In this document: piece after piece, positions 2,015 to 40,893 of the stretch
Numbering within the stretch: position 1 is the first letter of the stretch
Layout: every line of letters begins with the position of its first letter
Source of the DNA: Octopus sinensis
Taxonomy: Eukaryota
NCBI RefSeq assembly: GCF_006345805.1
Contig: NC_042999.1
Span: 4,898,001-4,962,000, forward strand
Reading direction: 5' to 3'
DNA: 64,000 nt
Position numbers and translations under genes: made by a program
Notes under the pieces: generated by a model
Told to the model about the DNA's origin: nothing
What the model saw: only the letters and a program-made list of their open reading frames with translations
The model's database searches: none

Positions 2015-2600
2015 TCAGCCACCTGGATTACTTCTCTCACCTATGGTCACCTAACAATGTAAAGTTAACAGCGGACCTTGAAGCAATCCAGTGAAGCTTC
2101 ACAAAGAAGATTGTCTCTTTGCAACAGCTCAGCTACTAGGAAAGGCTGAAACAGCTAAGACTCTACTCTTCGGAGCAAAGGTAGGAGAGGTATGCAGTAA
2201 TATACATCTGGAAGGAATTGTGCCAAATTTTGGTATTGAAAGCTACACCAATGCCAGAACAGGTTGACACTGCACGGTGCCAAAGATCCCAGCAATGCCA
2301 TCGCGCAAAGGACCAGTTACTGCAACAGCCTGGGTTTCAGGGACCCACAGCTTTTTAATATTCTCCCAAAGAGTCTGAGGAACCTGCACAAAGCAGATGT
2401 AGGCATTTTTAAATCAAAGCTGGACCTCTTCCTGTTGAGATTCACAGATGAACCTACCTCACGGCAAGAGGTGCAAATGAGGCTATCTACCTCAAACTCC
2501 ATTCTTCACCAAATGCCACATATTAGAGGAAGCTCTCAGTAATAACAGTGTAACAAAACGGTGGTGCTCCAGCATGGCCACAGCTCTGAGCTGAAACAAC
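2015..2600 (+). mobile_element. CR1-clade LINE 3' remnant (mirror at ~60590-61250)
   Basis: ORF2 C-terminal motifs (SLGFRDPQLFNILP, KLDLFL...DEP); the right copy additionally reads TFRTRNKETMMVLWRTFVISHLDY. Confidence 0.75.
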
Positions 2601-3739
2601 AAAGAAAAAATTATATTTAGGATCTCTTTAGTTTCACTCACACCTGTAAATCCATTTTTTAGGCAGAATGGTATACATATAAGATTCCAATACCTTGTAA
2701 GTTCCAATAGTGCTTAAAATTGGTCATTCCAAGTATAAGAGTTTGTATACAGTGTTATTGAATTGAGGGTTTTATTTAAATAAAACCCTCAATTCAATAA
2801 CATTGTGTACAAACTCTATACTTGGAATGATCGATTTTTTTTTTAACTAAACAGTTTGAAACTTTGTATACTGGTGTAATTTCTCATGCTGAACACGGTT
2901 TACTTTCAACATTTTTGACAAAATTTCATATTTTAGAAGTTGTCATATTTGGGTAATTTTAACCAATCAACGACATGTATTCAGCTGAAGAATACTATTG
3001 CAAACAGCAGTAGTTATCAAAGAACAACACCTTGCAGGTCATCTCTACTAAATGTCACCACCTGTTTCCTGCCTGTGTTGCATATCACAACCTTTGTTTT
3101 TTTGCGATCGCCTCTTTGTACATTTGCCTGTTAATTTTGCGATTATTTTCACTATCTGTTGCATTTTATTTTTGTTTACTGCCTGTGTTGCATACTACAC
3201 GCTTTGTTTGCTTTTCAATCGCCTCTTTGTACATTTGCATTTTCACCACACATAGAAAGAGGCAATCATCATCATCATCATCATCATCGTTTAACGTCCG
3301 CTTTCCATGCTAGCATGGGTTGGACGAAATCAAAAAGCAAAAAAAAAAGGCCTGTAATATGCAACACAGACAATAAACAAGAATAAAATAGAACAGAGTT
3401 GGTGACATTTAGTAGAGATGACTCAGAAGTTGTTCTTTGATTACTGTCACAAACAGCAGAGGTTTTCTTCAGCTGAATACATGTTGTTGATTGGCTAAAA
3501 TAACCCAAATAAGACAACTTTAACACGAAATAACTTCTACAATATGAAATTTTGTCAAGAATGTTGAAAGCAAACCATGTTCAGTGTGAGAAATCAAACC
3601 AGAGTACAAAGTTTCAAACTCTTCAGTTAAAATAATATTTAATCTGTGAGATTTTAATCTGAAGAGATCCTATATTTGTAGTATATTTTATATATATATA
3701 GGTAAACATACACATCATATCCACATACAAAGATAAATA

Positions 3740-4600
3740 CGAGGTCTGATCAATAAGTATCCAGACTGTTGCCATGGAAACAAAGCTAAAGCACACAGAG
3801 TGGATCCGCTTGGCAAAGATTGACCTTGCACTCTGTTGTGCATGCGCACACTAAGTTTTAATGTTCTAGCTCATTTCTTCTGTTTACAGCAGTGCTTTGA
3901 AGGAAGGTGTGTAGCGTTTGATCGTTGCATTGACCATGACAGAGAAAGTTGTCATGGCGATACGTGCTCAGAGGTCTGTACAAAGTTGCACACAAGTGTA
4001 CGAGTGGTTTGGACATTTCCAAGAAGGCCGAAAAAATGTCAATATTGATGAACATTCTGGGAGACCCACAACCAGCAGAACAGAGAAAAACATCACAGAT
4101 GTGCATGCAGTTATGAAGGGAAATTGTTGAATCACCATCCATGAGTCATCAGAGGATGTGCAGATTAGTGACGGTTCAGTTCAGTTCATTATCAATCAAG
4201 ATTTAGGTATGAGACATGTGTTTGCCAAGTTTGTGCCAAAACTGCTTTCAGCTGACCAAAAAGACACCCGGGTTTCAGTTGGACAAGATCTCGATTGTGT
4301 CAAGAATGAGGAAAACTTTTTGAAAACTTTGCGTGGGACTCTGAGCAGATATTGTCAAGCTTTTGTCAGAATTTGATGCAGATTCTCTGCTCAACTTTCT
4401 GTCATGGTCAATTCAATGATCCCACGCTATACACCTTCCTTCCAAGCACTGCTGTAAACAGCAGAAGTGAGCTAGAATGTTAAAAGTTAGTGCACATGCA
4501 CAGCAGAGTTGAAGGTCAATCTGTGCCAAGCGGCTTTAATCTGCGTTGCTATAGCTTCGTTACTACGGCAACAGTCTGAATACTTGTTGATCTGACCATG
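3740..4600 (+). mobile_element. Defective mariner element with long inverted termini (mirror at ~58605-59466)
   Basis: TA|CGAGGTCTGATCAATAAGTATCCAGACTGTTGCC TIR; transposase remnants VYEWF..F.EGR....DEHSGRPTTS and AKFVPKLL. Confidence 0.85.
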
Positions 4601-5356
4601 AATATACACCACGTGTGTATCTATTCTATTTATAAATGTTCTAAAATCTTCACAGCCTTGGTTTTTTATCTCATTCTGAAAAAAACAATTTTTATATACA
4701 CACATGCTGATATATGACCTACGTTGGACCCCTTATTCGCACAAGGACCGAACCTGGAGCTTAACTATGGTCTGTCCATAGCCCTTACTCAGCATTACCT
4801 GACTCCTTTGGGTCTTATTGACACCATTACCTCTCTCTCTGTATATTACAGTATTGACTTATAAACCTTTAATATATTTGGTAGTATACTATGGTTGCAA
4901 AACAAAATACTGTGTCCCTACCAGCAGTAACACACACACACATATATGTAAAGGTGCATGGGTGCCTAGTGGTTAGAGTGTTGTGCTCACAATCACAAGA
5001 TCATGGTTTCAGTTCCTAGACCAGGCGGTGTGTTGTGTTCACTTCGTCTCACTCTGCTCTGTGATTTCTTCAACACCTGGTGCGTGGTACACCGTGCACC
5101 TGTTCAGGCTAAATTGATTTGATGTAGGGAGTGAGCTGATGGACAGCTCATACATTTGACCACAATAAACAAACCCTTTTGTGCAAGTCATTCAGCACAC
5201 AGCTGAACACTACACTCATAAGTCATCTTCAACAGGAAAATCCATTATATATATATATATAAATATATATACAAATTGAGATAGGGGTTGTAAAGTATGA
5301 GATTGGGATCTGGTAATTGATATTTGATTTGGATGTATTTCTCCATTTTCTTATTT

Positions 5357-5405
<49 letters not shown>

Positions 5406-5991
5406 TTAGAGATAAAACCACTATTAGGCAAATCAAACAGTGAAAAACATAAACCAATACACAGAAATAAAAATAATTAATATAATATTCAAAATTTAAA
5501 TTATTTAAAGTTAAAGTTAAAATTTTAAAAATTATTTAAATTATTAATTTATACTTATAAATTTATATATATATATTATTTTTTTTTAATAAATATAATT
5601 ATCAAAAAGTATTAAAAAGTTTAATATAAGATAAAGAGTATATATATATATGTAAAGCATAATGTTATATGTATGTATATTATTGTAATTATCAGTTTAG
5701 TAAATAAATAAATAAATTGACATAATATAATGTCTAAAAGTTGATGAACCACCTATTGATCCCCTCCATTTTCTTATTGCTTTATAAATTAATGGTAAAA
5801 TATCTCTTCACATTCACCCATTTAGTACACTCGGTAATGTAATTGCAATGCAATAAAAAACACTTGTGTATTAATAACTGGGTATTCTACCAGCAGTATA
5901 TTGGATAGATATTATCCCTTAGTGGGTTGGATTCACAGCCTCTAACTTTCTTGGAGTTATATATATATATATATATAAATAAAAATAAATA

Positions 5992-6411
5992 CAGGGTTGG
6001 CCAAAAGTAACCAGACAGTAAATCAAAATTCCATGAATACTTAACCCTGTTGAGATTCTCTGTGTTTCTTTTAATTAATTATAAATATAACAAATAATTT
6101 AGTTATCATTAAGCTAGTGCTAGGAACATAAATTGTGACTAAGGTTTTCTGGAAGATTTCAATTCAGAACTTATGAAAACAAGACATCTGTACTACAGAG
6201 CCAGAGCCGGTTTCAGCCAGGTTGGTATCAGAAGAGTTAATATTCAATCTTGTTTATTCGTTCCAATTATGAATGTTGTGAGTTAAAATCACTGTTTTTT
6301 CTTTTCCTCCAACATTTGTCTATTTCTTAGTCTCATATAAAATATTTTTTTGTTTTAATCTTAGAATTAAATGCTTTTAATTTACTGGCAGGTAACTTTT
6401 GGCCAACCCTG
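5992..6411. mobile_element. Tc1/mariner-type MITE containing a nested TTAA-flanked MITE (6045-6236); mirror at 55962-56921
   Basis: TA|CAGGGTTGGCCAAAAGT(A/T)ACC TIRs at both ends. Confidence 0.8.
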
Positions 6412-8356
6412 TATGTATGTATGTATGTGTGTGTGTGTGTGTTTGTGTGTTTATTGCTAGTAGGGACACAGTGTTTTGTTTTGAAACTATTGGATGCTAG
6501 CAAATACATTAAGGGTTTATAAGTCAATATCATGTCCTGCTTTTGTGTTAGCAGTGCATTGTCTTCATTTTTAATTTTCTCTCTCCAGATTTTGTATACA
6601 ACCCAGAGCCAGCATTGAAAGTTACAACATTTTATATATGAATACATCTATGTAAACAATGTGATCAAAGACAGAAAAATGGGTTAAGGGCAGACATGCA
6701 TGTTTCAAGAGTTATTGTTCCCTCCTCAGCACCAAATGCAACCCATGAATACATTGCTAAAATACCCACCAAGTTTAGCAGTATAACACTATTGGATAGA
6801 ACAATTTACATATCAAACACTGAAGAAGGAGCAATAACTTCTGAAATGTGCATATACACCTAATACCTATTTTTCTAACTTCAATCACATTGCTCACATA
6901 GATGTATTTGTATACAAAACATCACAACTTTCAGTTCTGGCTCTAAATTCAATCAAAAATCTGTAACCTTTTAAATACACACACACACATATAATATAAT
7001 ATGTGACAAATATTCGGTAGCCAAGATAAAACTCTGAGTTTCGGATGCTGAGGTAGAAATCCACACCACCATCTCTTCAGTTATCCGGCCATCGGAAAAA
7101 CGCTATGAAAAAAGACCGTTTTACATACACACACACATTTTAGTGAAGAAATAACCTAAAAGATGGTGGTTTTAAGTTGTGTTTATTGAAGAGCTTCCTG
7201 TAAGTATGGTTGACTGGAAAATGTCTATCTATCAGTGCTAGGAAATATTTGCCTATATTGAAGGTCACCTCGGGTGAGTAGGGAGGTGTGAACCAGATGA
7301 TCTTTGGGCTAGTGACAGGTGTATAGGTTATTTCTTCGCTAAAACCACTATCTTTTAGGTTATTTCTTTGCTAAATATATATATATATATGTAATATATA
7401 TGTATGTATATATTAATGACAGTGTGTCTAGTGACTAAAACAAGTAAAAAATGAATGATACAGTCCTTGGACACACTGGATCCTGTCAAACTGTCTAACC
7501 CATGCCAGCATGGAATACAGACGTTAAATGATGATTCATTTGCTCTATGTGAAGACATATTTTCAAAAAGTAACTCAGTCATTTTATATCTTTCCCTTGT
7601 TTCAGTCATTACAACTGTGGCCATGCTGGGGCAACCACCTTAAAGAATTTTAGTTAAGTGAATTGACCCTGGTACCTATTTTTTAAAAACTTGGTATTTA
7701 TTCTATCAGTCTCTTTTGCCGAACTGTTAAGTTCTGGGATGCGTAAACACCCCAATACCAGTTGTCATGCAGGGGTGGGGGACAAACAGACACGCACGCA
7801 CACATGATAAGCCTAGTACTTATTCTATGAACCTTTTTTCTGAATCACTAAGTTATGGGGATATAAACAAACCAACACTGGTTATCAAGTAGTGAGTGGA
7901 GGACAGACAGACACAAACACATAACTATATATATATGTGTGTACGTACCAGATATATTGTGTTTGTGTGTGTTTTTGTCGCCACTACCAATTGACAACTG
8001 ATGTTGGTGTGTTTATGTCCCTGTAACTTAGTGGTTCAGCAAAAGAAAACAATAGAATAAGTACTAGGCTCTAAAACAAAATAAGTGGTGGGTCCAATTC
8101 ATTTGACTGGAAAATTCTTCATGGCCAGACTTGGCTGAAACAAGTAAAAGATAAAAGATCTCACTGGGCTATTATTAAAAGAAAGTGAAATTGCTGAAAG
8201 AAATGCTATGAGTATTAACATAACATCTGAAATTTCCATGAAAATGTTATTTTTACTGAGTGCTGGAAAGATTAAATGGATAGCAAGTGATACTGAGATT
8301 CAATTTATTTCAGAAATTAAGTTATTTCATTTGTGTCAACAAACATTTGCCAGTCG

Positions 8357-8418
<62 letters not shown>

Positions 8419-8824
8419 GTTCAAGTAAATGTCTCTCTTAAAATTAATAAATGATGTAATGAGTGAAGTGAATAGTGACTTCGAATGAAGTTACCCAATA
8501 ATTTAGAAAGGGATGAAATATGAATCAATTTAGGAAATAATTTTTCTTTGAAATCCTGTCATCCTAAATTAACAAGTTCATTCGTTAAGGTGAACTGCTT
8601 AATTACATAAAAATTCTCAGAGGATACCAACTTAAAAATTCCAATTTATTAAGCCTACTTCATGTTTAATTAGAAAGAAAATTTAAATATCTATTTAATT
8701 AGATAAAAAATCTGCTAAAAATCAATACTTTGATTTATTTTAAATCATTGTCTCTGACATTCTGTCAAATATTCACTAGATTTTTAAATACTTTTATAAA
8801 CATTGAAAATAAATGTTTATGGTA

Positions 8825-9008
8825 CGGAGGCGCAGGAGCGGCTGTGTGGTAAGTGGCTTACTTACCAACCACATGGTTCCAGGTTCAGTCCCACTGCGTG
8901 GCACCTTGGACAAGTGTCTTTTACTATAGCCTTGGGCCGACCAAAGCCTTGTGAGTGGATTTGGTAGACGGAAACTGAAAGAAGCCCACTATATATATAT
9001 ATATATAT

Positions 9009-9062
<54 letters not shown>

Positions 9063-9255
9063 TGTCTCCCCACCAACATCGCTTGACAACCAATGCTGGT
9101 GTGTTTACATCCCTGTCACTTCACGGTTCGGCAAGAGAGACCAATAGAATAAGTACTGGGCTTAGAAAGAATAAGTCCTGGGGTCGATTCGCTCGACTAA
9201 AGGTGGTGCTCCAGCATGGCCACAGTCAAATGACTGAAACAAATAAGAGAATAAA
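8825..9255 (+). mobile_element. tRNA-derived SINE, family B, near full length
   Basis: Head, central (TA)n and CCAGCATGGCCACAGTCAAATGACTGAAAC tail. Confidence 0.8.
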
Positions 9256-9983
9256 AGAAAGGTACAAATCTTGATTTCTAATAAAATTCCTAGTATATTT
9301 TTCTATCCAGCTTTAAAAATCTGGTTTTGTTTGTTGGTTTTTGTTAAAAAAAAGTTGTTATTGTTTCCTGTTGTCTTTTTGGAAAGAGATAAAAAAATAA
9401 ATAACTAATTTATGAATCGAGTGTAGAGCTTGAACATAGAAAAATAAATGCCTGATTTGTGAATCAATTAGGGGTCTTGGTGAACAGAAATATCGAAACG
9501 GTGGGTACCAAAAGCAGTGAAACAACACTTGTATTGGTGTTTGCATTGTAAGCTGTTTATATATTTTTAAAGTTTCCCTTCCAGGGACATCACAGCTGGT
9601 GAACAACTGTAATTGTAAATTCCATTACAATTGGTGTGGTTTCTGCAATGAATTAGCAAGAATTATGAGACACGCCTCCAAAATATTAATATCTAAAATT
9701 TGAGACGGTTTTAACAAATTTCACTTTGATTGTTTTATTTTGGGTCATTTTTCAAATTGCTGCCTTTTTTTTTTTAAAGTTTTTTACACAAAATAAACCC
9801 CCATCTTCCATGTGCCAATCAATTATTTTTGTCTTTTTCTGTGCTGTAATAATAATAATAATAATCATTAACTTTGAAGAAGCTTAAAAAATACATATTT
9901 ACATAAGAATACAACCAGGGAATGCTTTGCATATAAAATAAGCCATTGTGAAGATAAGTTTTTTTTTTTTTTCTCAATAAAAC

Positions 9984-10342
9984 TTAAGAAGTTGATCGAG
10001 CCTCTTCCACACTAACGGGGCTCCGAGTCCTACTCATAGATTGATTGTTAGAGGTTCCGTCTAAAATTGCAGGATGCATTGTAAAATGTCCTGATGAATT
10101 TGCAGATGAAGACGATGAAGATGCGCAGAGAGTTTTTACATGGACAGAGTTCATGTTGTCATGGTCTGTCAGCTGGCTGCTGTCCGGACTAGGAGATGCA
10201 GAATGCATATGCAAGCTATTATTGTATGCTAGAAGGCCTTGCCGTTTGGATTTACTAATCTCCAATAAATGGTCAAAGCACTGAGACTTCCTCTTTAGTA
10301 ATTCCTTCTTGTGTTCCGCTTCTGCAACTCGACGTCGAAGTT
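9984..10342 (-). CDS. GMEB: Last coding exon, left copy
   Basis: ttcttag|AACTTCG; LRRRVAEAEHKKELLKRKSQCFDHLLEISK...ARSTS*. Confidence 0.85.
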
Positions 10343-12280
10343 CTAAGAAAGAAAAGATAAAGAAAATTCATATAAGCAGAGTAATTCTAATATCCTCTCT
10401 GTAAGAAAATTTATTTAATCACCTGGAACAGTGGTTCACAACCTATTTAATATCCAGGCTAGATCCAAAACCTAGAATGTAAAAAACACCATTTGAGCAT
10501 GGCCATTGCCAGTACCGCCAGACTAGCCCTCGTGCTGGCGGCATGTAAAAGCACCCACTACACTCTCGGAGTGGTTGGCGTTAGGAAGGGCATCTAGCTG
10601 TAGAAACTCTGCCAGATCAGATTGGAGCCTGGTGCAGCCATCTGGTTTGCCAGTCCTCGGTCAAATCGTCCAACCCATGCCAGCATGGCCGGTTTAAACA
10701 TTAAAGGGTTAAAGACAAACACATTTTTCTTTTTAATTACCACAATAACAGCTTGAATCAACCCCCCCCCCCCAACGAAAAACCTAAACTTACAAATTTC
10801 AAACCAATACCAACAAAGAATGTAGACACTTTACCTTCCATTTCTTTATCAAGTTTCTCTTTCTGTCGTTCCATGTCAGTTTTATGAGCTGCCAACCAGT
10901 GTTTCAGTTTTGATGTCAAACCCAGTTCACTGGCAACTCTTGAAACCTTCCGTACCTCTGCAATTCACAATAGAGCATATGGATTAACACTGGTTTCAAA
11001 TTTTGGCACAAGGTCAGCAATTTGGGGGAAGGAGATAAGTCGATTACATCGATCCCAGGCGAGCTGGCAGAAACGTTAGCACGCCGGGCGAGATGCGTAG
11101 CCGTATTTCGTCTGCTGTTACGTTCTGAATTCAAATTCCGCCCAGGTCGACTTTGCCGTTCATCCTTTCGGGGTCGATAAATTAAGTACCAGTTGCGTAC
11201 TGGGGTCGATATAATCGACTTAATCCGTTTGTCTGTCCTTGTTTGTTCCTTCTATGTTTAGCCCCTTGTGGGTAGTAAAGAAATAGATTACATCGACCCC
11301 AGTACACAACTGGTACTTACTTTATCGACCGCAAAAGGATGAAAGGCAAAGTCAGCTTTAGCCGAATTTGAACTCAGAACGTCAAGATGGACGAAATACT
11401 GTGAAGTATTTTGACACAAGGCCAGCAATTTCAGAGCAGTGGAAAGTGGATTACACCGACCCTGGTAGCATTTGAACTCAGAATCTACAAACATGAAATG
11501 CAGTTAAGCATTTTGCCCAGCATACTAACGGTCTTGCAATGATATGGAATGATATTACAATGTTATTATTATTCTTCAAATCAATTTTCAGTAATAAAAC
11601 AGACTTGAAGGTTTTGATACCAGAAAAGAAATTCTTTCTCAATTTGTTTTATGTCTTTTTTTGTCTCTTCTTTTTCCAGGCTTTGACATCTTACATTAAC
11701 TGAGGCAGTGCTCTGCAACCAGACAGCCTTCCTGTCATCAAGCCTTACCCGGTTTTCAAGTAGGAGTTCTTTTATTTCCCATCCAAGTCCTACGACTGGC
11801 ACCCTGCAGTTGCCAGTGCCGCTGGACTGACTCCTGTGCAGGTGGCAAGTAAAGAAACACCGTTTCGACCCTGTGCTTGAGGAGACCTATTGAGTCAAGT
11901 ACATCAACATAAAAAAATCAATGGAAATTGTAGTTGTGATCCCTGTACCGGTGGCACGTAAACAGCACCCTATTACACTCATGGAGTATTTAAGGGTTAT
12001 GCAAGGGTAAAAATGTTGAGAAACACTGGTTTAGACTGATCTGACATTGATTTATAACAAAGTTAAACTTACCTTCAAGTGGACATTGGTTTCGAATGAG
12101 ATTATGTTTTAGATTGTCCAAGGTGGTCTTGATTTCCCGAAATATTTCATCAGCAAGTCCGAGCTCAATTATTCCTTTCCAAAACAGTTGACTTTCTACA
12201 AGAGACAAAAAACAAGAACTTCATTTCTTCAAGGAGTAACAGTAAACAATTATACACTCAATGGAAAGTTTGATTCCTAA

Positions 12281-12343
<63 letters not shown>

Positions 12344-15300
12344 GAAAATGTAATAGAATTTAGAATGTAAAAATAAATTTAGAATAGAATATTAGAATCA
12401 ACTGTAAGAGAATTCAAAAAATTCTTCTGGACTATTTCACTTGTTTATTTTTAATGGTTTAGCCCAGTGGTTTTCATATGACCCTTGGGGGTCTATATAA
12501 GAGTTTGTTATTTAAAATTTAACTGCAATAAGTTGGTTATAATTCTACAAGACACAAAATATTTTAATATTTTTATACAATCCCTAGTAATATTTAATTA
12601 TAAAAATACAGTAAGATTTCTTAAAATAGGAATCAAAGGGGTCCATAGGTTAAAAAAATGGCTGAGGACCACTGATTTAGCCAGAGAAGAGTAGCACCCA
12701 TGATCCTTTGCAAGACTGATAGGAGAAAGAAAGGAAGTTGTCATTTGAAAGATCTGGCCTGGGCACTGGCACAGAATGGACACAAACAAAGACACCCAAA
12801 AGCCAAGTGGTGGTAGTGCTAAACCAGAAGCTAAAGTCTACCCCGCAAGAACGAGATTAGTCCTTCCAAAGGATTTCATAGTTTACTCTCCGTGCTGGTG
12901 GCACGTAAAAGGCACCATTCGAGCGTGATCGTTACCAACGTCGCCTTACTGGCACCTGTGCCGGTGGCATGTGTAAAAAGATTCGAGCGAGGTCATTGCT
13001 AGTACTGACTGACTGGCCCTGTGCCGGTGGCACATAAAAAGCACCCACTTCACTCTCGGAGTGGTTGGCGTTAGGAAGGGCATCCAGCTGTCGAAACTCT
13101 GCCAGATCAAGATTGGAGCCTGGTGCGGCCATCTGGTTTGCCAGTCCTCGGTCAAAATCGTCCAACCCATGACAGCATGGAAGGCGGACGTTAAACGATG
13201 ATGATGAAAGATTTGGTTGACGTAACTGGCTTTGCATCAGTTACAACAAGTAGAGATTCAGTTGATAGAATCAATGGAACGGCCTAATGGGGAAATTAAT
13301 GTGCAAGTGGCTGAGTACTCCACAGACACACGCATCCTCAATGTAGTTTTCAAGGAGATTCAGTGTGTCACAGACTGTCACGACTGACCCCTTTGAATCA
13401 CAGGTACAACTCATTTTCGTAAGCTGAATGGATTGGAGCAATGTGAAATAAAGTGTCTTGCCTAAGGATACAATGTGGTGCTGGATATTGAACTCATGAC
13501 CTTACGATTGTCACCTGAAAACTTTAACCATGAAGCCACACACTTTCACTTCGTTGACCTGAGGCTGTGGTGGACGACAATTAAACTAAGGTGTTGTGCA
13601 CTGGAATTGAACCTGAGATCACACACTTGCAAAGCACACTTCCTAACCACACAGACCTGCCTGGTGATTACAAAAAGAAAAAAAGAGATTGAATGTAATG
13701 AAATTATTTTGAGTATTCTAAGCGAAGAGTAAGGAATAAAGACATCTGAGGGCTTTAGATGAAGTTCACTGAGGCAGATTCTAAGGCTGGGTGCACTTCC
13801 TGTTGCCAACCCTAACCTGTTTCCAAGCAACATAATATTTCCCCATCAGTTAGTCCATATTACTCCGTCAGGAGCATAGGACTGGTTTCCCAGTTTCTCT
13901 GGCAAATATATTCCTCCTGGTCCACCACAGGATTGCTCATTCCTGCCAGCTGACCGGAGCAACGTAAAACGAAATATTTTGGTCAAGAACACAATGCATG
14001 GTCTGGTCCAGGAATCGAAACCACAATCTTACAATCATGAATCCCACACCCTAACCACGAAGCCATGCACCTCCCCATAGCCAGATATTTTTTCATGGAA
14101 AAACTGTACCAAAATGATGCTCATTTGCAACAGCACACAATGTCAAAACAATGACACAGACATAGACACGTCACAAAACAGACGTTAAAGTGATGATGAC
14201 AATGATGGTGATGTTATATTAGTTTGTTTCCATCAATCCTCCCACACTTTGTAGATTATGTTTGTTGTTTGCTTTGTTGCACAAAATAAAGCAGAGAAAT
14301 ATGGAGAGGGAGAGAGAACTGAGATTTGCAACAGTTTTGCTGAGTAGAAGGTAACCTCACTGGTGCTGGTGCCATCATAAACTGTACCCCATTCACTCTG
14401 CAAAGAGGTCGGTAAACAAGCAGGGGTATCCTAAGGTTGAAAGGACCCTTTATTCTTACTGAGGACATAACAACCTGCCTAGAGCTGGCACCATGATAAA
14501 ATGCACCCAGTACATTCGGTAAAATGATTGAAGTACATCCAACCATAGATACCTTGCCAGTACAAAATACAAGAACAAGGTGCTTTCCTGCAACTATGTC
14601 AAAGAGGGTAGTAATTCTGCAAACTGTGGCAACCCCTCTAACTCCTGACAGCATGGAAAGCAAACAATGATGGCAAAGATGACATTCTAATTTGTCTCCA
14701 ATCAACTCAGTTGGTTCGTTTAGCTTTCATTAGTATTTTCCCTCAATACAAAAACCACTAAGATATCTTTAGCTTAGTCAATGCCAGTAAAACAGACTAA
14801 CATAGAAAAGCAAACCTCCAGGTGTTCAAATGTCATTGCTTTTCATCATCATCATTGTTTAACGTCCGTTTTCCGTGCTAGCACGGGTTGGACGATTCGA
14901 CCAGGGTCCAATCTGATCTGGCAGTGTTTCTACAGCTGGATGCCCTTACTAACACCAATCACTTTGTGAGTGAGGCGGGTGCTTTTTATGTGCCAGGGAA
15001 GGCTGGCAACGGCCACGATCGGTTGGTGCTTTTGTGCCACCGGCACAGAAGCCAGTCAAGGCGGCGCTGGCATCAGTCACGTTTGGAAGGTGCTTTTTAC
15101 GTGCCACTGGCACAGGGATCACGACTACATGTGCCAAATGATGATGGTGATTAATAACAATCTCTGAATAATAGAGATACTAAGGAGTTTATTTATCAGT
15201 GTGAGAATGTGTCTTGGTAAGTATTTCATGAAACAAGAACAGTTGTTAGTCGATGAAGTACATTGGCTATGTGGTTAAGCTACTAGAGCGATGATCACAG

Positions 15301-18104
15301 TCGTGAGCTCAAATCTTACCAGAGCCACTGGGCTGTGCTCCAACATACACCATCACAACAGTAGTACTAGAACGAGGAAATGTCTGTAAAACTGCAAAAA
15401 GAAAGAAACAAAACAAAAAAAAACTCATTTTGACTTATTAAAACAAAAAGAGTTTTTGAGATAAGCACAGCACTGAAGTATAGAATATTTAATTTGGCAC
15501 TTGACATGAAATGTCAAGTGTCCGCAACTGAAGTGTTCAAAATACATTCCACAGTAAACCTTTTTCAAAAGGATAAACCAAACAAACTAAGGAACCAAAT
15601 ATCTTCCTTTAAATGTTGTATTCAAGAAACAACTCAAGGCCCTGAAGATTGAGGCTTCAAGGGGCTGCAAAGAATTTTTAGAAATTGCTTTAATTAAGGA
15701 CGTGAAATATGTAAAACAAGGAGAAGTAAAGAAAATAATCTTCATGGAAACTAGAAAGGAGTGGTTGTGTGAATAAGAAGCTTGCTTCCCAACTACATGG
15801 TTCTAGGTTCAGTTCCACTGTTGGGCACCTTGGGCAAGTGTCTTCTACTATAACACAGGGTTGACAAAAATGCTTTGTGAGTGGATTTGATAGGCAGACA
15901 CAGAAAGAAGCTCATCGTGTGTGTGGTTGGTTCAACAGGATTTGGCAAGCCACAGGGCTGCATTGCCCTTCAATTGCAGCTTTGGCAAAGCTTCTTTGGC
16001 CAAATGCCCTTCCTAATGCCAACCACTTTACAGTGTGTACTGGTGTACTGAGTGCTGTTTTGTGCCTCCAACACTACTTGGCTGTTAATTCAATGAACAG
16101 TCAGGGAGAAGACCCATCTATCAAGTGGAAACCCATTCAAAGTGAAGGAGAAGAAATCCCATGGATCAAAAAATTGAATCACTGTTGTCAAAAATCAACA
16201 AACATCCAGTTAAAAAATGCTTCAAGCATTTGACAATTAGGACAGCCTTTCAACAGAAGGCGAAAACAATTCACTTTTGGAAAGATTGTAAGAAAATAAT
16301 AAACCCCAGCAGGAAACCATTCTTGTGATAATATCTTTTATCTTTTGAGGCAGCACGCTGGCAGAAACGTGAGCACCCTGGGGGAAATGCTTAGCAGTTT
16401 TCATGTCTTTATGTTCTGAGTTCAAATTCCACCAAGGTCAACTTTGCCTTTCATCCTTTCGTGGTCAATAAATTAAATACCAGTTGTGTACTGAGGGTCA
16501 ATCTTATCGACTGACCCCTTCCCCCAAAAAATTTCAGGCCTTGTGCCTAGAGTAGAAAAGAATATCTTTTATCTTTTATTTGTTTCAGTTATTAGACTGT
16601 GGCCATGCTGAAGCACCTCCTTGAAGAAATTTTAGTACTGGGGTCGATTTGTTTGACCCCAGTACTTTTCATCTTAAGCCTGGTACTTATTCCATCGGTT
16701 CTTTTGCTGAACTGCTAAGTTATGGAGACAAACAAATCAACACCAGTTGTCAAGTGATGGTGGGTGACAAACACACACACACATAGATACAACAGGCTTC
16801 TTTCAGTTTCCGTCTATTAAATCAGTCCATCCAGAGCAGGGTTTCAGTCAGGCTGAAGCTATAGTAGATGACATCTGTCCAAAGTACCACACAGTGGGAG
16901 TGAACCTGGAACCGTGTGATTGGAAAGCAAACTTCATACCACACAGCCACGCCTACACCCAGTCTAATATGTATTTCTTTATTGCCCACAAGGGGCTAAA
17001 CATAGAGGGAACAAACAAGGACAAAGGGATTAAGTTGATTACATTGACCCCAGTGCGTAACTGGTACTTATTTAATCGACCCCGAAAGGATGAAAGGCAA
17101 AGTCGACCTCGGCGGAATTTGAACTCTCAACGTAACGGCAGACGAAATACCACTAAGAATTTCGTCCGGCGTGCCAACGTTTCTGCTAGCTCACTGCCTT
17201 AACTACACCCAGTGTAATATAGTAATTAAAATACATTATTTGATTGGCTCTACACAGTTTCCACCTACCGAAGTAGACTCACAAGGGGACCAAAGGTTTC
17301 CTGAAAAAAGTACTCTTCAAAATTTGCACCAAGAATAAGCACAAGGTAAAATTACTACCTGCTTTTATAGCAAGTTGATGCAGGTAGTTTATCCTGTCCT
17401 CCGACTTTTAGTTCATCCAATTGAAATAACTGTTATTTATGGGATGACCCAATATATATGTGTGTGTGTGTGTGCATCTTTGTGTTTGTCCCCTAGCACT
17501 CATTAAGAGCCAGTGTTGGTTTGTTAACATCCCTGTAAGTGGTTTGTCATGAGTCAATGATAGAATAAGTACAAGAGTTAAAGTACTGGGGTTAATTAGT
17601 TCAACTAAAAATACCCTTTAAGGTAGTAACCCTTGCATGGCCACAGTCCAATGACTGAAACAAGTAAAAGATTAAAAGATGTGAATTTCTAGAAGAAGCA
17701 GAGCTTAAACAAAACAAACAAAAAGAAAGAGGAAAGAGTTAGGTTCTATGGTAGATTGCCTAATAAAAAGGAACCAGAAGTGATCATCATCATCATCATC
17801 ATTTAATGTCATTGTTCTATGCTGGAATGGGTTGGGCAGTTTGATAGGAGTTGGTAAGGCTGGAATTGCACCAGGCTCCATTGTCTGTTCTTGCATGGTT
17901 TCTACAGCTGGATGCCCTTCATGGCACCAACACCAACAGGGTCACCAAGCAATTTGCAAGGCAAAACTTCTTGGCTTGGAGGACACGGGAAATCGTATTG
18001 AAGCAGGAGTGGCTTTGTGCCAGTTGAGCGTTTGAAAGATTAAGAGGCACAAGGATAGATGTTCATTAGTTAATAAATAGCAAATTACATACCATCAGGT
18101 GGTT

Positions 18105-18135
<31 letters not shown>

Positions 18136-21100
18136 TTCTTCAGTGTTTTCAGCTGTCACAGCTCTATGCAGAACCTGTACACTTGGTTTGACATCGGGGT
18201 CATCTTGGTTTTGAGATTGATTAACATACGTATACTGACTTCCTACTGCTTCAGCAATTTTGCCAGAAGTCTGTTCAGAAACATAGAGATAATTGTTTTC
18301 TTTAATGCTAATCCCAGTCTCTGCCAGCAGAGTTGAGATTGGGGCCAAAGTGCCATCATCAAATACCATTGTCTTCAAAGGTGCGTGCGGTACACAGCGA
18401 CCTGTACACATCTCTTGGTGATTAGTAAAATCCAACTGTCCTGATTCAATGTACTTCCTGAAGGGAATGAAAGTGAAGACATTTAGAACAACTCTACACC
18501 ACTTTATACATTTGTATTATCATCATCATTATTATGTAACATCTACTTTTCCAAGCCTGAATGGGCCACACAGAATTGGGTACTACTAGTGAACAGTGGT
18601 CCTGGTGCGTGCACACGTGCATCCGCGCTAGCTCTTCATAAGTAGTCGATCCAACAATGACTTTTTAACCCTAACCTTAGTTTGTTTATAAAAATAATTT
18701 ATTTACTTAGTTTTAAAAATTATTTAAGATTGACTACTTACGACTAGCTACTGCGGATGCGCGTGTGCACACACCGGGACCACTGTTCGCTAATAGTACC
18801 CAGAATTTGTTGAGGCAGATTTTCTACAGCCCAAATGCTTTTCCTACAAACACCACATGATGTCAAGACTAGGATACACACACACACAAATACATACACA
18901 CAATATAATAATGTGTAAGATGCTGAGCACTCCACAGACACAGGTACCTATTTCTTTACTACCCACAAGGGGCTAAACACAGAGAGGACAAGCAAGGACA
19001 GACAAACGGATTAAGTCGATTAGATAGACCCCAGTGCATAACTGGTACTTAATTTATCGACCCCGAGAGGATGAAAGGCAAAGTCGACCTCGGCGGAATT
19101 TGAACTCAGAACGTTGCGGCAGACAAAATACCGCTAAGGATTTCGCCCGGCGTGTTAATGATTCTGCCAGCTCGCCACAGACACAGGGACCCTTAATGTA
19201 GTTCTCTGGAAGATTCAGCCTGACATGGAACGAGACAAGGCTGGCCCTTTGAATTACAGCTGCAGCTCATTTTTGCCAGCTGAGTGGACTGGAGCAACGT
19301 GGAGTAAAGTGTCTTGCTCAAGGAAACACTATACTGCCAGGTATCAAACTCACAAGCTTACAATCGTAAGCTGAGCACCCTAACCACTTAGCTATGTGCA
19401 AGAGTAGAGATGGGGGTAGAAGTGAATGTAGTAAGTGAGGACCAGGAGTGGAGGGGCAGCTTGAGACATAAAAATGGTAAAAGTGATGTCTTGACTATTA
19501 AGTGTTGTTTGTATCAGCAAAGTATACAAATCAATAAATTCTATACAAAGAGATTCTTTAATTTCCCAAAACTTTGCTTGTTTATAAACATGAAGCATCA
19601 CTGCATTGATATCATTAAATTTCTTAGAATAGATTAACATGTGGCTGTGTGATAAGAAGCTTGCTTCCCAACCACATGGTTCCGGGTTCAGTTCCACTGC
19701 ATGGCAGCTTGCACAAGTGTCTTCTACTATAGCCTCAGGCAGGCCAAAGCTTTGTGAGTGGATTTGGTAGACAGAAACTGAAAGACCATTGTGTATGTGT
19801 TTGTGTTTATGGTCCTGTAACTTAGTGCTTCAGCAAAAGAGACTGATAGAATAAGTACCAGGCTTTGAAAAAAAAAAGTACTGGAATTGATTCGTTCATT
19901 CGACTAAAAATTCTTCAAGGTGGTGCCTCCATTCCAAATAAGGTAAAAACTGTGATAAAAAACTTTAACCCTTTCGTTACTATATTTCTGACCGAAATAC
20001 ACTCATGAGTTTCAATTAAATTCTAAAATAATCATGAATCTAGGCTTGTTTCATTAAATAACTGTAACTTTTTTACTTATCAACATATTAATGTGATATT
20101 TGGAACATAATTAAAGAAAGGGTTCTTAATCAATTCTATTGCATAACTTTTGTCTCAAAGTGACTTTAATTACAGGTAAATCCACGTAAATTGAGCAAAA
20201 AGGTAAAAATATTAAAATTTTTAATTGAGCAAAAGGTAAAAATATTAAAATTTTGTTTAAACATCACCATAGAAAATGAATCATCAGCTAATATTCAAAT
20301 GGGTATGCAACAAAATTTTGATAAAGAAGAATTGTGCACATCACTATATCATCTGTTGAATTTAGTGCACAACAGGTGTACCATAAAGGTGGAATAAAGT
20401 GAAATACTGGAATCCACCGTAAATTTGACTGAACTAAAGAAATCGGTCAAAAAATAATATACGGCCCTGGTTATGGTATGGAAGTGATAAATTCCAGACC
20501 ACATCGTTCCCTAGGCCATGCTGACTAACATTATTTTCCCTGTATAAAAACTAAATCCACGCAGTACTCAGTATTTGCTTCACAAATTTTCCGAAATCTG
20601 AACCCCCATTTTGTGTTTGTTTACATTCAGCGTAAGTTTGTTTCCGCATTGATCACTTCAAACAATAACGTCCAGACCACATCATACCCTAAGTCATGCT
20701 GACTAACATTAGTTTCCCTGTATAAAAACTAAATCCACAACAGTACCCAGTATTTGTTTCACAAATTTTCCAATTCGGAATCAATGCTTGATAACATGAA
20801 ACTCCTATCCATTTTCAAAGTTGAAGAAAAATCGATGCCGAAAAAAATCTCCCAAAATTCAGGGAATTAAAATTACACGTCGATCGTTGTACAAAACTGT
20901 AGATTAACTGTTTACAAAGCATAATCACATGTTTTCACGAATGTACTAAAGAGATTTGCTCTGATATTCTCATTTAAATATGAATAGGTAAATTCGGGCG
21001 GGTTTGGGCGGTTTGGTAACGAAAAGGTTAATGAAACAGATCAAAGATGAAATACCTGAGTTGGATGCCATTCATTCGAACAGCATTCTTCCAGTCTTTC

Positions 21101-21267
21101 AGCTTTTCTTTCTCGCCCATGACAGAAAACAGTTTCGGAGAGATAAAACGACCTTCATACTCAATACATTCTCGGTGAATGCCAGGACAAATAAATTTCT
21201 CCATATGTAGTTTGCCAACCAAATTTCCACAGGTGACTGTTATCACCCCTGCACTATCTTCAGTCAT
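9984..21267 (-). CDS. GMEB: GMEB-like SAND/KDWK-domain transcription factor, left paralog (5 coding exons: 21267-21056, 18457-18093, 12195-12073, 10957-10835, 10342-9984; 393 aa)
   Basis: Exons are bounded by AG/GT with compatible phases (2,1,1,1) and splice into one open frame. Motifs ITVTCG..KFICPGI..CI..EG..ISPK.F...GEKEKLKDWKNAVRMNGIQLRKYIESGQLDF..H...C...C (SAND plus Zn motif), FWKGI.ELGL and KRKSQ all match the GMEB1/2 family. Upstream exon(s) were not located. Confidence 0.88.
10835..10957 (-). CDS. GMEB: Coding exon 4, left copy
   Basis: ttgcag|AGGTAC...GAAG|gtaaag; VRKVSRVASELGLTSKLKHWLAAHKTDMERQKEKLDKEME. Confidence 0.85.
11059..11286 (+). mobile_element. tRNA-derived SINE, family A (GGCGAGCTGGCAGAAACGTTAGC...GAATTCAAATTCC...AAAGAAATAG)
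   Basis: A/B-box-like head. Further copies at ~16985-17205, ~18950-19180, ~21520-21735, ~28855-29085, ~31800-32035, ~38315-38545, ~39823-40055, ~41795-42025 and ~62595-63005. Confidence 0.85.
12073..12195 (-). CDS. GMEB: Coding exon 3, left copy
   Basis: ttgtag|AAAGT...GAAG|gtaagt; SQLFWKGIIELGLADEIFREIKTTLDNLKHNLIRNQCPLE. Confidence 0.85.
12465..12674. mobile_element. hAT-type MITE (mirror at ~46302-46555)
   Basis: CAGTGGT..TCA / TGAGGACCACTG termini; 8-bp TSD gtttagcc/atttagcc. Confidence 0.7.
12890..13207 (+). mobile_element. RTE 3'-end repeat (GACGTTAAACGATGATGATGA tail)
   Basis: Same tail as the RT-bearing element at 23668. Other copies at ~10495-10690, ~14845-15145, ~48055-48530, 56288-56819 and ~62085-62345. 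Confidence 0.75.
18093..18457 (-). CDS. GMEB: Coding exon 2 (SAND Zn-binding tail plus polyQ), left copy
   Basis: cttcag|GAAGTAC...GATG|gtatgt; KYIESGQLDFTNHQEMCTGRC...QQQQQQQQQQQPPD. Confidence 0.85.
18578..18801. mobile_element. MITE with ~70-bp TIRs starting GGGTAC and an apparent 6-bp TSD AGAATT (mirror at 40197-40420)
   Basis: gggtactactagtgaacagtggtcc... / ...ggaccactgttcgctaatagtaccc; AGAATT on both flanks. Confidence 0.75.
19969..21027. mobile_element. piggyBac-type non-autonomous element, left arm only
   Basis: TTAA|CCCTTTCGTTAC ... GTAACGAAAAGG|TTAA; the right arm has a single TTAA empty site (~39031). 1059+4 nt equals the offset shift. Internal ~100-bp direct repeat with ~178-bp period. 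Confidence 0.9.
21056..21267 (-). CDS. GMEB: SAND-domain exon, left GMEB-like copy
   Basis: ttacag|ATG...CTCAG|gtat; encodes the KDWK motif. Confidence 0.9.
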
Positions 21268-21875
21268 CTGTAAGAGAGAATTGAGTTTTACTAAGATAAC
21301 AAGTAGAAGCTGTTAGATAAATACATTTTCAATAGGCTGCAATGAAGCATTGCTATCAAGTTTTGGTACAGGGCCAGCAATTTGGTGGGACTGGGCAAGT
21401 CAATGACCACCCCTGTACTCATTTTATTGAAAGGAAGAAAGGCAAAGTTGATCGCAAAAGTTTAAAAGGCAAAACCTCAGCAAAATTTAAACTCAGCACA
21501 TAAAGACAAACAAAATACCTATTTCTTTACTACCCACAAGAGGACAAACTAGGACAGACAGACGGATTAAGTTGATTACATCGACCCCAGTGCGTAACTG
21601 GTACTTAATTTATTGACCCCGAAAGGATGAAAGGCAAAGTCAACTTCAGCGGAATTTGAACTCAGAACGTAATGGCAGACGAAATACCGCTAAGTATTTA
21701 GCCAGGTGCGTTAACGTTTCTGCCAGCTCGCTGCTTTAATATACAAAATACCATTATACATTTTGCCTGCTGTGCTAACAATTCTGTCCGTTCGCCATTT
21801 TTGGCTGCAACGAAATATTGAATGCAATTTCAATCAAAAGGATCATCATCATCATCATTTAATGTCTGTCTTCTA

Positions 21876-22330
21876 CAGGGTGTGCCAAAAAAATGTACTC
21901 GCATTTTGACTCTCCATAACTCACTGGATTTTTCATTTCTTTTTGGATCAAATTGATCCTAATAATGGCAGAAGTATGACAAAGATTTGAAGGAGAAAAT
22001 TCATGAAAAAGTGCGACTTGGAAGCATTGAAACATCGTGGAAGTGCTAAGACAATTTGAAGTGATTTTCAGAAAGATCCACCAGTGCAATGCAACACTGC
22101 TCGCATCCAAGATAAGTTTGAATCAGATGGAACTGTGCATGACATCCATAAGGAACATCCAAGAAAGTAAGAGAAAAGGAATTGTCCTAAAGGAAAAAGA
22201 ATTGCTGGAAACCCTTCACTGTTCCCCACAAGTTTTTGTATGACAAATGACTCATGAGAGCGGAATCCCTAAATCAAGCACCCGTCGCATTTTGAAGGGA
22301 GTCCGTTGGAAATGTTACATGTGAACATTA
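21876..22330 (+). mobile_element. Tc1/mariner transposase 5' remnant (mirror at ~37720-38171)
   Basis: TA|CAGGGTGTGCCAAAA terminus; frameshifted HTH-like peptide VEVLRQFEVIF..KFESDGTV.D..SGIPKSSTRRILK. Confidence 0.65.
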
Positions 22331-22789
22331 AACCATGCTCTAAATGAAGTTGATTTATCCTTTTATGCATTTAACCATCAATCTTGTTTCTAAGACAATC
22401 AACAATGCATTTATTGTCATTTAAAGAGTACATTGGGGGAGGGTGGATACCCTGGATATTGGCATGGATTGGATGGCTTGACAGGACCACCCAACTAGCC
22501 AGAGGACTGTGCTGTGTTCCAGTGTATGCTTCGGCATGATTTCTACAGCTGGATACCCTTCCACAACAAACAACCCATTAAATTCAGTTTCAAATTTTGA
22601 CACAAGGGAGGGTCAGGTCGATCACATCAACCTCCCCAGTGCATAACTGCTATTTCTTTTTTCAACCAACTTCAACTTAGAATATAAAGACGAATGAAAT
22701 GGTGCTAAGCATTTTGACCAGTGAGCTAATAATTCTGCCAGCTTGCTGTCTGAAACAACTCATTAACTTCAACCAATGAAGCTAATGAG

Positions 22790-23320
22790 TTCCCTAGTGA
22801 GAACAAGTCTCCTTTACGGCAGCGAGTCATGGCCGATGAGGGTGGAAGATATTAAGTAACTAGAATCCTTCGATCACCTCTGTCTACGCCGCATCTTTCA
22901 TGTCCGATGGCATCACTTTGTCTCCAACAATTCGGTGCGACAACAGTGCAAAATCACCTCCCTCCAACAAGTCATTCTAACGAGACGTCTGCGTTGGCTG
23001 GGTCATGCCCTCCATCATCAACCAGGAGAATTCATCTACGAAGCAATTGCCCCAGCTCCCCTTCAGGGTTGGCGAAAGCGGTTGTGGTGGACAACGCAAA
23101 ACCTGGCTGATGATAGTCAAGGCTGATCTGGAACCCAACCTAGACCCCATATCTACGGCATTCACCGCTGGAATAAGGAGTGGTTGGAGATCATATGGTC
23201 GTTAGCCCCAAATCGCTAGGTCTGGTCAGCGTTTGTGAGAGATGCAGCATTGAGGATAAATGAAGCCAGCTCATCACACCCCGGGTGAATGCAGTCTCAA
23301 GACAAGAAAAGACAATCGTG
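22790..23320 (+). mobile_element. RTE-like LINE 3' remnant (mirror at ~36760-37260)
   Basis: RRLRWLGH and GGQRKTWL..VKADLEP motifs in shifted frames. Confidence 0.7.
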
Positions 23321-23667
23321 ATGATGGCTTAACTGTCTTCATAGGGGTTATCCTAAGACATTAGTCCATGCTCTAAATGAAGACAATTTATTCTTTTATG
23401 CATTTAACTATCAAGCTTGTTTCTAAGACAATACTGAGATATTTAACCTTTGAGTTACCACATTTCTGTTGAAATACATTATTTCACTTTACACATTAAC
23501 TTTCTTTTAAATAACAAAGAATTTAATGAATTAACTTTGTCATTTTTAAGTTGTTGTTTCCAACATAAATTAACATGAAATTTAAATGGAAAGTTTTAAC
23601 TTAGATGATTTTAAAATGGGAAGTCTGTACCATAAAGCCAGGGGCAATGTCAGATGGTTTGGTATCA

Positions 23668-26276: not shown

Positions 26277-26435
26277 TACCGTATTTTAACGTGTATAAGG
26301 AATCTATTTTTGTCAAAACTTAGTTTTAAAAAATATGGGAGTTTCTTACACACGGATAGTATTATAATCCTTTATTTTTTCCAAATTTTAAGAACCCCAA
26401 AATTAGGGGGTTCCTTATACACGTTAAAATACGGT
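26277..26435. mobile_element. Short MITE, probably Tc1/mariner superfamily (mirror at 34951-35111)
   Basis: TACCGTATTTTAACGTGTATAAGG TIRs. Confidence 0.7.
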
Positions 26436-28529: not shown

Positions 28530-28787
28530 GGTAACGTGCCCCATTTTAACGTCGAGAAACAAATATGGACGTTGCTTTGAACGGAAACGGACACTGACGT
28601 CATTGACGTTTCCTTACGTCACGACTCGGTGTGACACGTGAGCGTTGCGTTCCGCCAACCCCGTCGCGAGTTCGTCGCCGCCTTCGCCGTCATCGTCGTC
28701 GTTTTAACGAAGTCGTTGGGTGACGTTGGTTTTGAAAAGGAAGAGGAAAAGTAAGAGGAGAGAACAACAGAGAATGGTTGACCTCCT
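28530..28787. promoter_or_regulatory. CpG-rich candidate promoter with CRE/ACGT cluster (left copy)
   Basis: Local CpG enrichment in otherwise AT-rich DNA; TGACGTCA (28595), TGACGT (28604), TTACGTCA (28614), CACGTG (28635); ~7.3 kb 5' of the SAND exon. TSS not determined. Confidence 0.6.
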
Positions 28788-38794: not shown

Positions 38795-39006
38795 ATGACC
38801 GAAGATAGTGCAGGGGTGATAACAGTCACCTGTGGAAATTTGGTTGGCAAACTACATATGGAGAAATTTATTTGTCCTGGCATTCACCGAGAATGTATTG
38901 AGTTTGAAGGCCGTTTTATCTCTCCGAAACTGTTTTCTGTCATGGGCGAGAAAGAAAAGCTTAAAGACTGGAAGAATGCTGTTCGAATGAATGGCATCCA
39001 ACTCAG
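38795..39006 (+). CDS. GMEB: SAND-domain exon, right GMEB-like copy
   Basis: ttacag|ATG...CTCAG|gtat; KDWK motif; 4 nt differences from the left copy (one Y/F change). Confidence 0.9.

Positions 39007-40862: not shown

Positions 40863-40893
<31 letters not shown>

Follow-up and report, generated by a model that had tools for sequence, protein, structure and literature searches.

Large palindromes are a familiar feature of the human and ape Y and X chromosomes, where long inverted arms exchange sequence by arm-to-arm gene conversion, the spacer can become inverted and the identity of the arms exceeds 99.9%. A second well-described case is that of the primate L and M opsin genes, in which conversion homogenises the introns and purifying selection protects exons 3 and 5 (PMC3213168). 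The locus described here lies in a 64,000-nucleotide (nt) stretch of chromosome CM016861.1 of Octopus sinensis (NC_042999.1, positions 4,898,001 to 4,962,000), referred to below as the window. An inverted repeat of about 27 kb, found by self-BLAST and by MAFFT alignment of its arms, spans the window, and each arm carries one GMEB-like gene with a SAND domain. The two genes, L on the left arm and R on the right, have been homogenised by conversion over most of their length but keep a set of fixed differences in their C-terminal coding exons. The locus offers a clear new case of a known process, conversion opposed by selection. No earlier description of it was found, no dedicated literature search having been made.

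Similar to the L/M opsins (PMC3213168), the octopus paralogs diverge more in exons than in introns, synonymous sites included, and their nonsynonymous divergence is below the synonymous. In both systems, the exon trees group by gene, the other sequence evolves in concert and the conversion tracts lie mostly outside the protected exons. The octopus genes are inverted, standing head-to-head around a 3.8-kb spacer, whereas the opsins are arranged in tandem. A further difference is that the octopus gene encodes a transcription factor, whose protected residues have no known phenotype, and that the comparison involves two genomes rather than population samples. The octopus pair also protects its C-terminal module only, and the DNA-binding domain is freely homogenised. 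With the sex-chromosome palindromes the locus shares arms of tens of kb, a short spacer, two-way conversion and a possible spacer-flipped haplotype (contig VCDQ01000472.1). Its arm identity, however, is a 97-98% mosaic and not above 99.9%, and its paralogs, instead of staying identical throughout, appear from their sequences to have diverged functionally in part of the gene. No sign that CM016861.1 is a sex chromosome was noted, though sex linkage was not checked.

Fixed differences in the C-terminal exons

The two genes are transcribed outwards from the spacer. Their spliced products are 393 (L) and 390 (R) amino acids (aa) long and are identical to the O. sinensis proteins XP_029633455.1 ('GMEB1-like X2') and XP_029634390.1 ('GMEB1 X2'), with the reading frames and all AG/GT splice sites intact in both. 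An alternative cassette exon, missed in the preliminary description of the window, is used in the X1 isoforms. The assignment of the window to CM016861.1 and the placement of the right arm are supported by a chromosomal segment (L007, CM016861.1:4926795-4960094) that matches window positions 28795-62094 at 100%. The arms and exons, with the number of positions at which L and R differ in O. sinensis, are as follows (UTR, untranslated region).

Left arm: 2015..28787, carries the L ('GMEB1-like') gene on the minus strand (self-BLAST, MAFFT)
Spacer between the arms: 28788..32577, about 3.8 kb
Right arm: 32578..61175, carries the R ('GMEB1') gene on the plus strand (self-BLAST, L007 match)
Exon 1 (SAND domain, start codon): L 21056..21267 (-), R 38795-39006 (+), 4/212 nt differ
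Exon 2: L 18093..18457 (-), R 40541-40905 (+), 0/365 nt differ, inside the longest identical tract
Cassette exon, 72 nt: L 15320..15391 (-), R 43603-43674 (+), 7/72 nt differ
Exon 3: L 12073..12195 (-), R 46794-46916 (+), 9/123 nt differ, 8 of them fixed in both O. sinensis and O. vulgaris
Exon 4: L 10835..10957 (-), R 49601-49723 (+), 11/123 nt differ, 9 of them fixed in both species
Exon 5, the last coding exon, including the stop: L 9984..10342 (-), R 51745-52094 (+), 15 nt differ plus a 9-nt indel
3' UTR: L 9300..9983, R about 52095-52800, 8/681 aligned positions differ (1.2%)

At the protein level, the last exon differs by eight aa substitutions and a 3-aa indel. Against an arm background of 2.2%, differences are enriched in exon 3 (7.3%, P=0.002), exon 4 (8.9%, P=1e-4) and the variable part of exon 5 (7.1%, P=2e-4). 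The cassette exon is also significantly enriched, and exon 2 is significantly depleted (P=3e-4). The pairwise ratio of nonsynonymous to synonymous substitution rates (dN/dS) over exons 3-5 is 0.24. All the exon counts made by eye in a preliminary description of the window, including those for the last exon, were reproduced exactly. The near identity of the 3' UTRs and an offset between the arms of 58998-58999, constant from 15722 to at least 19964, were likewise confirmed.

The same palindrome with both gene types is present in Octopus vulgaris (OX597816.1:8639067-8710154, loci L001 and L002), where high-scoring segment pairs between the arms are 89-97.6% identical. Octopus bimaculoides (L003) contains a single gene at the locus examined, with no inverted repeat in a search of 10 kb on either side, and the upstream flank of this gene matches the right part of the O. 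sinensis spacer (31221-32577). At the Argonauta locus (L004), where no screen for an inverted repeat was run, one gene was called. Sites were classed among the four arms of O. sinensis and O. vulgaris in the reliably aligned bins of a five-way alignment. The global MAFFT alignment was unreliable at 10414-10708, 11970-12033, 16000-17500 (O. vulgaris R) and 25000-25500, and these bins were excluded from the counts. Sites at which L differs from R in both species are termed orthology sites, and those at which each species has an allele of its own in both arms are termed concerted sites. The classification returned 144 orthology sites, 121 concerted sites and 19 of the third pattern, which serves as a control.

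Exons 3-5 contain 30 fixed L/R differences in 593 sites and no concerted site, compared with 122 fixed differences in 18,334 non-coding sites (P=5e-16). This supports the exclusion of conversion from the C-terminal coding exons that had been proposed in the preliminary description. Only one fixed difference is found in exons 1-2. The fixed differences of the C-terminal exons are grouped in three peaks around a homogenised block.

Peak 1: 10036..10242, 13 fixed L/R differences in 207 bp, all in the last exon and comprising all of its fixed differences
Peak 2: 10813..10993, 13 fixed L/R differences over 181 bp, with exon 4 at the centre and its edges included
Homogenised block of intron 3: 11386..11969 (R 48338-48920), 584 bp, 97.9% identical
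Peak 3: 11973..12274, 15 fixed L/R differences in exon 3 and about 80 bp of intron 2

No fixed difference occurs in the 3' UTR (9300-9985), at 10243-10414 or in the intron 3 block (11338-11972). A single island of divergence over exons 3-5 with near-identical flanks had been described earlier. The excess on these exons stands, but it is not continuous, as the homogenised block separates exons 3 and 4. Near identity of the flank holds on the 3' UTR side. On the other side, positions 12200-14197 diverge at an ordinary 2.4-3.8% and the next identical tract begins at 14198.

Between the two species, the L copies of exons 3, 4 and 5 differ at 2, 1 and 0 nt and the R copies at 0, 2 and 2 nt. Across both species, the L-to-R difference in the same exons is 9, 9-12 and 14 nt. 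The differences therefore group by gene across species and exceed those of the introns, synonymous sites included, and all 30 fixed differences are older than the split of O. sinensis and O. vulgaris. Both the fixed differences and their concentration in exons are reproduced in two independent assemblies.

Conversion between the arms

Formal alignment of the O. sinensis arms gave a mosaic of divergence and not uniform identity, with most 500-bp bins at 1-4%. There are 692 differences in 23,977 aligned sites, and overall the arms differ by 2.2-2.9%. Exact identical runs of 2168, 899, 807 and 652 bp were recorded, and none of 10,000 permutations gave a run above 552 bp. The principal tracts are listed below.

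7390..9003 (R 54955-53368): 1614 bp downstream of the gene, near-identical with 4 differences
14198..15096 (R 44782-43884): identical tract of 899 bp
16543..19006 (R 42455-39993): longest identical tract, 2168 bp exact plus 295 bp
21993..22799 (R 38054-37248): identical tract of 807 bp upstream of exon 1

The direction of exchange can be read from the state of the converted copies. Within 16543-19006, both O. sinensis copies have an L-type exon 2 (H94, E116), whereas O. vulgaris R, O. bimaculoides and a third octopus paralog have arginine and glycine at these positions, which points to conversion from L to R. Within 14198-15096, both O. sinensis copies are R-type, indicating conversion from R to L. 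In O. vulgaris, the cassette exon of L is R-type. The bin 22000-22499 contains 10 concerted sites, and its arms are near-identical in both species. The derived allele is carried by both O. sinensis arms at 48 concerted sites and by both O. vulgaris arms at 30. Orthology and concerted sites occupy different tracts, and bins rich in one class tend to be poor in the other (Spearman rho = -0.46, P=0.003). Taken together, the two site patterns place the duplication before the split of O. sinensis and O. vulgaris, with conversion continuing in both lineages since. Conversion has been non-reciprocal and repeated, has run in both directions and has held most of the 27 kb, including the SAND exons, at 0-3% divergence.

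Ongoing conversion between the arms had been suggested at the outset. Conversion itself is supported by identical runs beyond the permutation maximum and by the excess of concerted over control sites (121 against 19). The word "ongoing" depends in part on zero-divergence tracts that occur in one assembly only. Differential conversion was also considered as a general source of the differences between the arms of the two species, and was rejected because the single-copy left flank is also 1.5-3.7% diverged.

Several observations concern individual segments of the arms. The third GMEB-like paralog (L005, CM016864.1:82415216-82447030) is truncated and consists of exons 1-4 with their introns, situated within another gene on a different O. 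sinensis chromosome. It is R-like in exon 2 and the cassette exon and resembles the ancestral state in exons 3-4. The cassette exon of O. sinensis L (15320-15391) has seven unique differences within 43 bp, three of which match O. bimaculoides. The same exon in O. vulgaris L, both R copies and the third paralog is the same to within 1 nt. The unique states imply an old L-type haplotype that has been retained only in O. sinensis. Between O. sinensis and O. vulgaris, the L copies show a single difference over the 1152 bp at 9463-10614. This stretch covers the 3' UTR, the last exon and part of intron 4 with a short interspersed nuclear element (SINE). The R copies differ there by 1-1.4% and the arm-wide L-to-L difference is 2.8%; constraint, a sweep or introgression are possible causes.

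Selection, timing and alternative explanations

Changes in exons 3-5 were assigned by parsimony on the tree (((Ls,Lv),(Rs,Rv)),Bi),Ar, where s and v denote O. sinensis and O. vulgaris, Bi O. bimaculoides and Ar Argonauta. The synonymous (S) and nonsynonymous (N) changes on each branch were as follows.

Shared stem before the L/R divergence: 9 S, 2 N
L stem: 5 S, 10 N
R stem: 7 S, 8 N
O. bimaculoides branch: 3 S, 1 N
Four post-speciation branches: 6 S, 0 N

A burst of amino-acid change thus fell on both paralog stems (18 N to 12 S, compared with all other branches, Fisher P=0.0014) and then halted (0 N to 6 S). Relative to O. bimaculoides, both copies are accelerated in exons 3-5 (24:4, P=2e-4 and 20:6, P=0.009); no significant acceleration was recorded for exons 1-2 of either copy. 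Synonymous divergence on the stems amounts to 12 of 128 sites (about 9.4%), which is about 14 times the density of fixed differences in non-coding sequence (0.67%). Due to this excess, protein-level selection alone cannot explain the peaks, which must be older than the rest of the arm.

The duplication would fall between the divergence of the O. bimaculoides lineage and that of O. sinensis from O. vulgaris. The first limit follows from 10 sites that group L and R against O. bimaculoides and Argonauta, compared with two and one for the alternative groupings, and an origin before the O. bimaculoides split was rejected on the same counts. It has been reported that the O. bimaculoides split dates to about 34 million years ago and the split of O. 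sinensis and O. vulgaris to about 2.5 million years ago (PMC10700109). As a rough estimate from synonymous counts at few sites, the L/R split in the protected exons is about 40-45% as old as the O. bimaculoides split.

The explanation proposed here begins with an inverted duplication that would have produced the two head-to-head GMEB-like genes, between which non-reciprocal conversion has run in both directions ever since. Soon after the duplication, each copy may have fixed amino-acid changes of its own, some in a helical module that is conserved and others in the disordered tail. Purifying selection would then have purged the conversion tracts that overwrote these residues, along with the synonymous and intron-edge sites in tight linkage. 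Under such purging the peaks would reflect how old the duplication really is, and the remaining arm sequence only the time since its last conversion. Gene conversion opposed by selection at the C-terminal exons is probably the explanation of the pattern.

A number of points weigh against this explanation. The post-speciation branches hold six changes only and are therefore weak evidence for renewed constraint. No branch has a dN/dS above 1 (the stems have 0.55 and 0.32), and relaxed constraint instead of adaptive divergence may account for the burst. In O. sinensis, exon 4 is now confined to a stretch of homology of about 350 bp, isolated by heterologies on both sides, and the edge of a heterology comes within about 40 bp of exon 3. 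Mechanical suppression of conversion may add to the effect at these two exons. The O. vulgaris arms have no identical run of at least 350 bp, and zero-divergence tracts are seen only in the O. sinensis assembly GCA_006345805.1. The same assembly holds an unplaced contig of this locus, VCDQ01000472.1, that is an L/R mosaic, and for this reason the most recent conversions could be assembly artefacts. Both assemblies are from long reads; for O. vulgaris, short-read polishing followed (PMC10700109) and could be the source of some concerted sites.

The foremost alternative to selection against conversion is a mechanical one. Here, indels in introns 3 and 4 would break the homology of the arms, conversion could not reach exons 3-5 and the divergence of these exons would be neutral. 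The indels are large in O. sinensis, where L and R have different deletions of the ancestral intron 4. The lengths of the two introns are given below for all five copies.

O. sinensis L: intron 3 1115 bp, intron 4 492 bp
O. sinensis R: intron 3 2684 bp, intron 4 2021 bp
O. vulgaris L: intron 3 1809 bp, intron 4 3302 bp
O. vulgaris R: intron 3 2721 bp, intron 4 2269 bp
O. bimaculoides: intron 3 3118 bp, intron 4 3284 bp

The large deletions of L introns 3 and 4 are specific to O. sinensis, and are thus younger than the fixed exon differences that they would have to explain. In O. vulgaris, intron 3 is collinear between L and R from end to end. It is mostly 1-3% diverged, with about 3% overall (54/1693) and up to 5-8% across a SINE-like stretch, yet exons 3 and 4 of the same arms differ at 9/123 and 10/123 nt, which is above the level of intron 3 (Fisher P=0.002), and their 100-bp bins reach 8-10%. 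The exons remain peaks where pairing is unbroken, which favours selection against conversion over a block to pairing. The exon 5 peak (10036-10242) also lies inside continuous homology and is homogenised on both sides. The isolated 584-bp block of intron 3 is homogenised although it now lies between heterologies in O. sinensis, and elsewhere an identical tract directly adjoins a heterology of 1063 bp. Nor does a neutral model predict a burst of 18 N to 12 S followed by no N at all. A mechanical exclusion is improbable as the cause of the peaks. Both selection for paralog difference and a pairing block by the intron indels had been put forward in the preliminary description; the former is favoured and the latter disfavoured.

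Selection against conversion has also to be set against an artefactual origin of the near-identical flanks. In this case collapse of the assembly, or short-read polishing across the palindrome, would have produced the identity, no conversion would be ongoing and the peaks would be the ordinary divergence of old paralogs. The identical runs restricted to one assembly fit such an origin, as does the mosaic contig. A segment of the latter (L006, VCDQ01000472.1:1741-36109) was compared with window positions 12622-31256 and 39031-62079 and encodes an R-type protein. In the contig, the spacer is reversed and is followed by the inner arm of L (0-4 differences per kb, including an L-only insert), after which the sequence switches and continues as R-type to the outer flank. 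Several L/R switches fall between about 21.8 and 19.0 kb, a distance of about 3 kb. It is either a recombinant or spacer-inverted haplotype or a chimera of assembly, and it draws attention to a structural polymorphism, or a fault of assembly, at this locus of the O. sinensis reference. An artefact does not account for the recurrence of the fixed differences and their exon concentration in two independent assemblies, nor for an intron block and a 3' UTR that lack fixed differences in both species. The 30 concerted sites derived in both O. vulgaris arms, the R-type cassette exon of O. vulgaris L and the segregation of orthology and concerted sites into separate tracts also argue against it. It is hard to credit as the source of the pattern, and the exon peaks, being seen in both assemblies, are unaffected by these caveats.

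The least probable alternative to selection against conversion does away with any old divergence. After a recent duplication, local hypermutation or a diverged tract imported from another paralog would have made the exons evolve faster. Derived changes are clustered (about 10 in 174 bp around exon 3 of R, 6 in 77 bp of exon 4 of L), both lineages are accelerated relative to O. bimaculoides and a third, truncated paralog is available on CM016864.1, but that paralog has ancestral states in exons 3-4 and was rejected as a donor, the L- and R-specific residues occur in no other recovered sequence, each peak has changes from both lineages, exons 1-2 of the same genes are not accelerated, and the 9 synonymous changes on the pre-duplication stem of exons 3-5 fit elapsed time and not a burst of mutation.

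Repeats of the locus and the encoded proteins

The arms and their surroundings contain a number of repeats. The 1063-bp insert at 19965-21027, in intron 1 of L, is a non-autonomous element of the piggyBac type with a TTAA target-site duplication and CCCTTTCGTTAC/GTAACGAAAAGG terminal inverted repeats. It is missing in R, both O. vulgaris arms, O. bimaculoides and the third paralog, and is hence a recent insertion specific to O. sinensis. A SINE-like family of about 230 bp has at least nine copies in the window, with 85-92% identity.

SINE-like copies: 11058-11286 (insertion in intron 3, L only), 16972-17202, 18945-19176, 28856-29088, 31806-32038, 38316-38548, 39823-40054, 41796-42026 and 62611-62841

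A second repeat family (10481-10688, 12948-13207 and 62085-62334) is responsible for an L-only insertion in intron 4. Immediately outside the left arm, at 1068-1630, there is a 26-bp tandem array of 21.7 copies with 96% match, and an (AT)n tract of about 364 bp (53018-53381) is found in the right arm only. An Rfam scan of the whole window gave zero matches. In O. vulgaris, exon 2 of the R copy (L002, P0040) has an in-frame tandem duplication of 18 aa (NQSQNQDDPDVKPSV.VLH twice) and a different length of its polyglutamine tract, which is variable among all copies. The O. vulgaris annotation begins the L-type gene within the inner end of the opposite arm, across the spacer (L001 10001, about 33.7 kb in the window). 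If this start is real, the 5' exons of the two genes interleave.

The proteins belong to a family that includes the vertebrate GMEB1 and GMEB2 and the nematode SPE-44. Common to its members are an N-terminal SAND domain with the KDWK motif and a subsequent His/Cys cluster, and a conserved C-terminal helical module is a putative third shared feature. The octopus proteins are shorter (390-417 aa) and start at the SAND domain, and the pair is a young lineage-specific duplicate that is not orthologous to the vertebrate split into GMEB1 and GMEB2. The SAND domain was identified by Pfam (PF01342, E=8.7e-24, residues 6-79), with LKDWK in both copies, and residues 4-92 match the GMEB1 structure PDB 1OQJ (E=3.6e-22). 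Nearly all database matches, the O. sinensis proteins among them, are recorded with PF25892 'Spe-44'; the local Pfam scan gave SAND only. H84, C88 and C92 are invariant across 21 homologs and align with '...YQHDKVCSNTC' of GMEB1. This cluster, right after the SAND fold, corresponds to the zinc site of GMEB1 and would be a putative metal site in the octopus proteins.

The region encoded by exons 3-5 is strongly conserved across the 21 homologs, with the consensus FWKGI.ELGL.DE.FREIK..LD.LK ... KLKYRL.AHK.DMERQ .... An AlphaFold2 model is confident for the SAND domain and residues 190-310 (predicted local distance difference test 86-97), placing helices at 193-203, 207-227, 232-244 and 248-312 and a disordered tail at 312-393. 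The paralog substitutions strike positions that are otherwise conserved, such as L221 and the KLKYRL motif. Four R-specific changes (I214F, T216N, L221I and N224K) fall in helix 207-227. Of the L-specific changes, Y223H is in the same helix, V242A in helix 232-244 and three others (Y253H, R254W and D267E) in the long helix. The other changes, along with the 3-aa deletion in R, are in the Ser-rich tail. In this family the C-terminal module presumably sets oligomerisation or the choice of partner, as the model would also suggest; a search for literature on the GMEB coiled coil returned nothing usable. L and R may therefore share their DNA-binding specificity and differ in oligomerisation or partner binding.

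In a more far-reaching proposal, the palindrome would be an actively recombining unit in which conversion is used, and not merely tolerated, by selection. The DNA-binding half would be interchangeable, the helical module would be kept in two versions with different dimerisation or partner specificity, and the mosaic contig would be a real haplotype, recombinant or spacer-inverted, that places the R-type coding end behind an L-type upstream region. This proposal is speculative, with perhaps a small chance of being correct.

The locus is a clean cephalopod example of escape from concerted evolution at the level of a domain, validated across species. It also demonstrates how badly the divergence of palindrome arms can underestimate the age of a duplication, with 2-3% in the arms as opposed to about 9% at protected synonymous sites. 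For the GMEB/SPE-44-type regulators, the approximately nine substituted residues in the conserved helical module are candidates for determining partner specificity.

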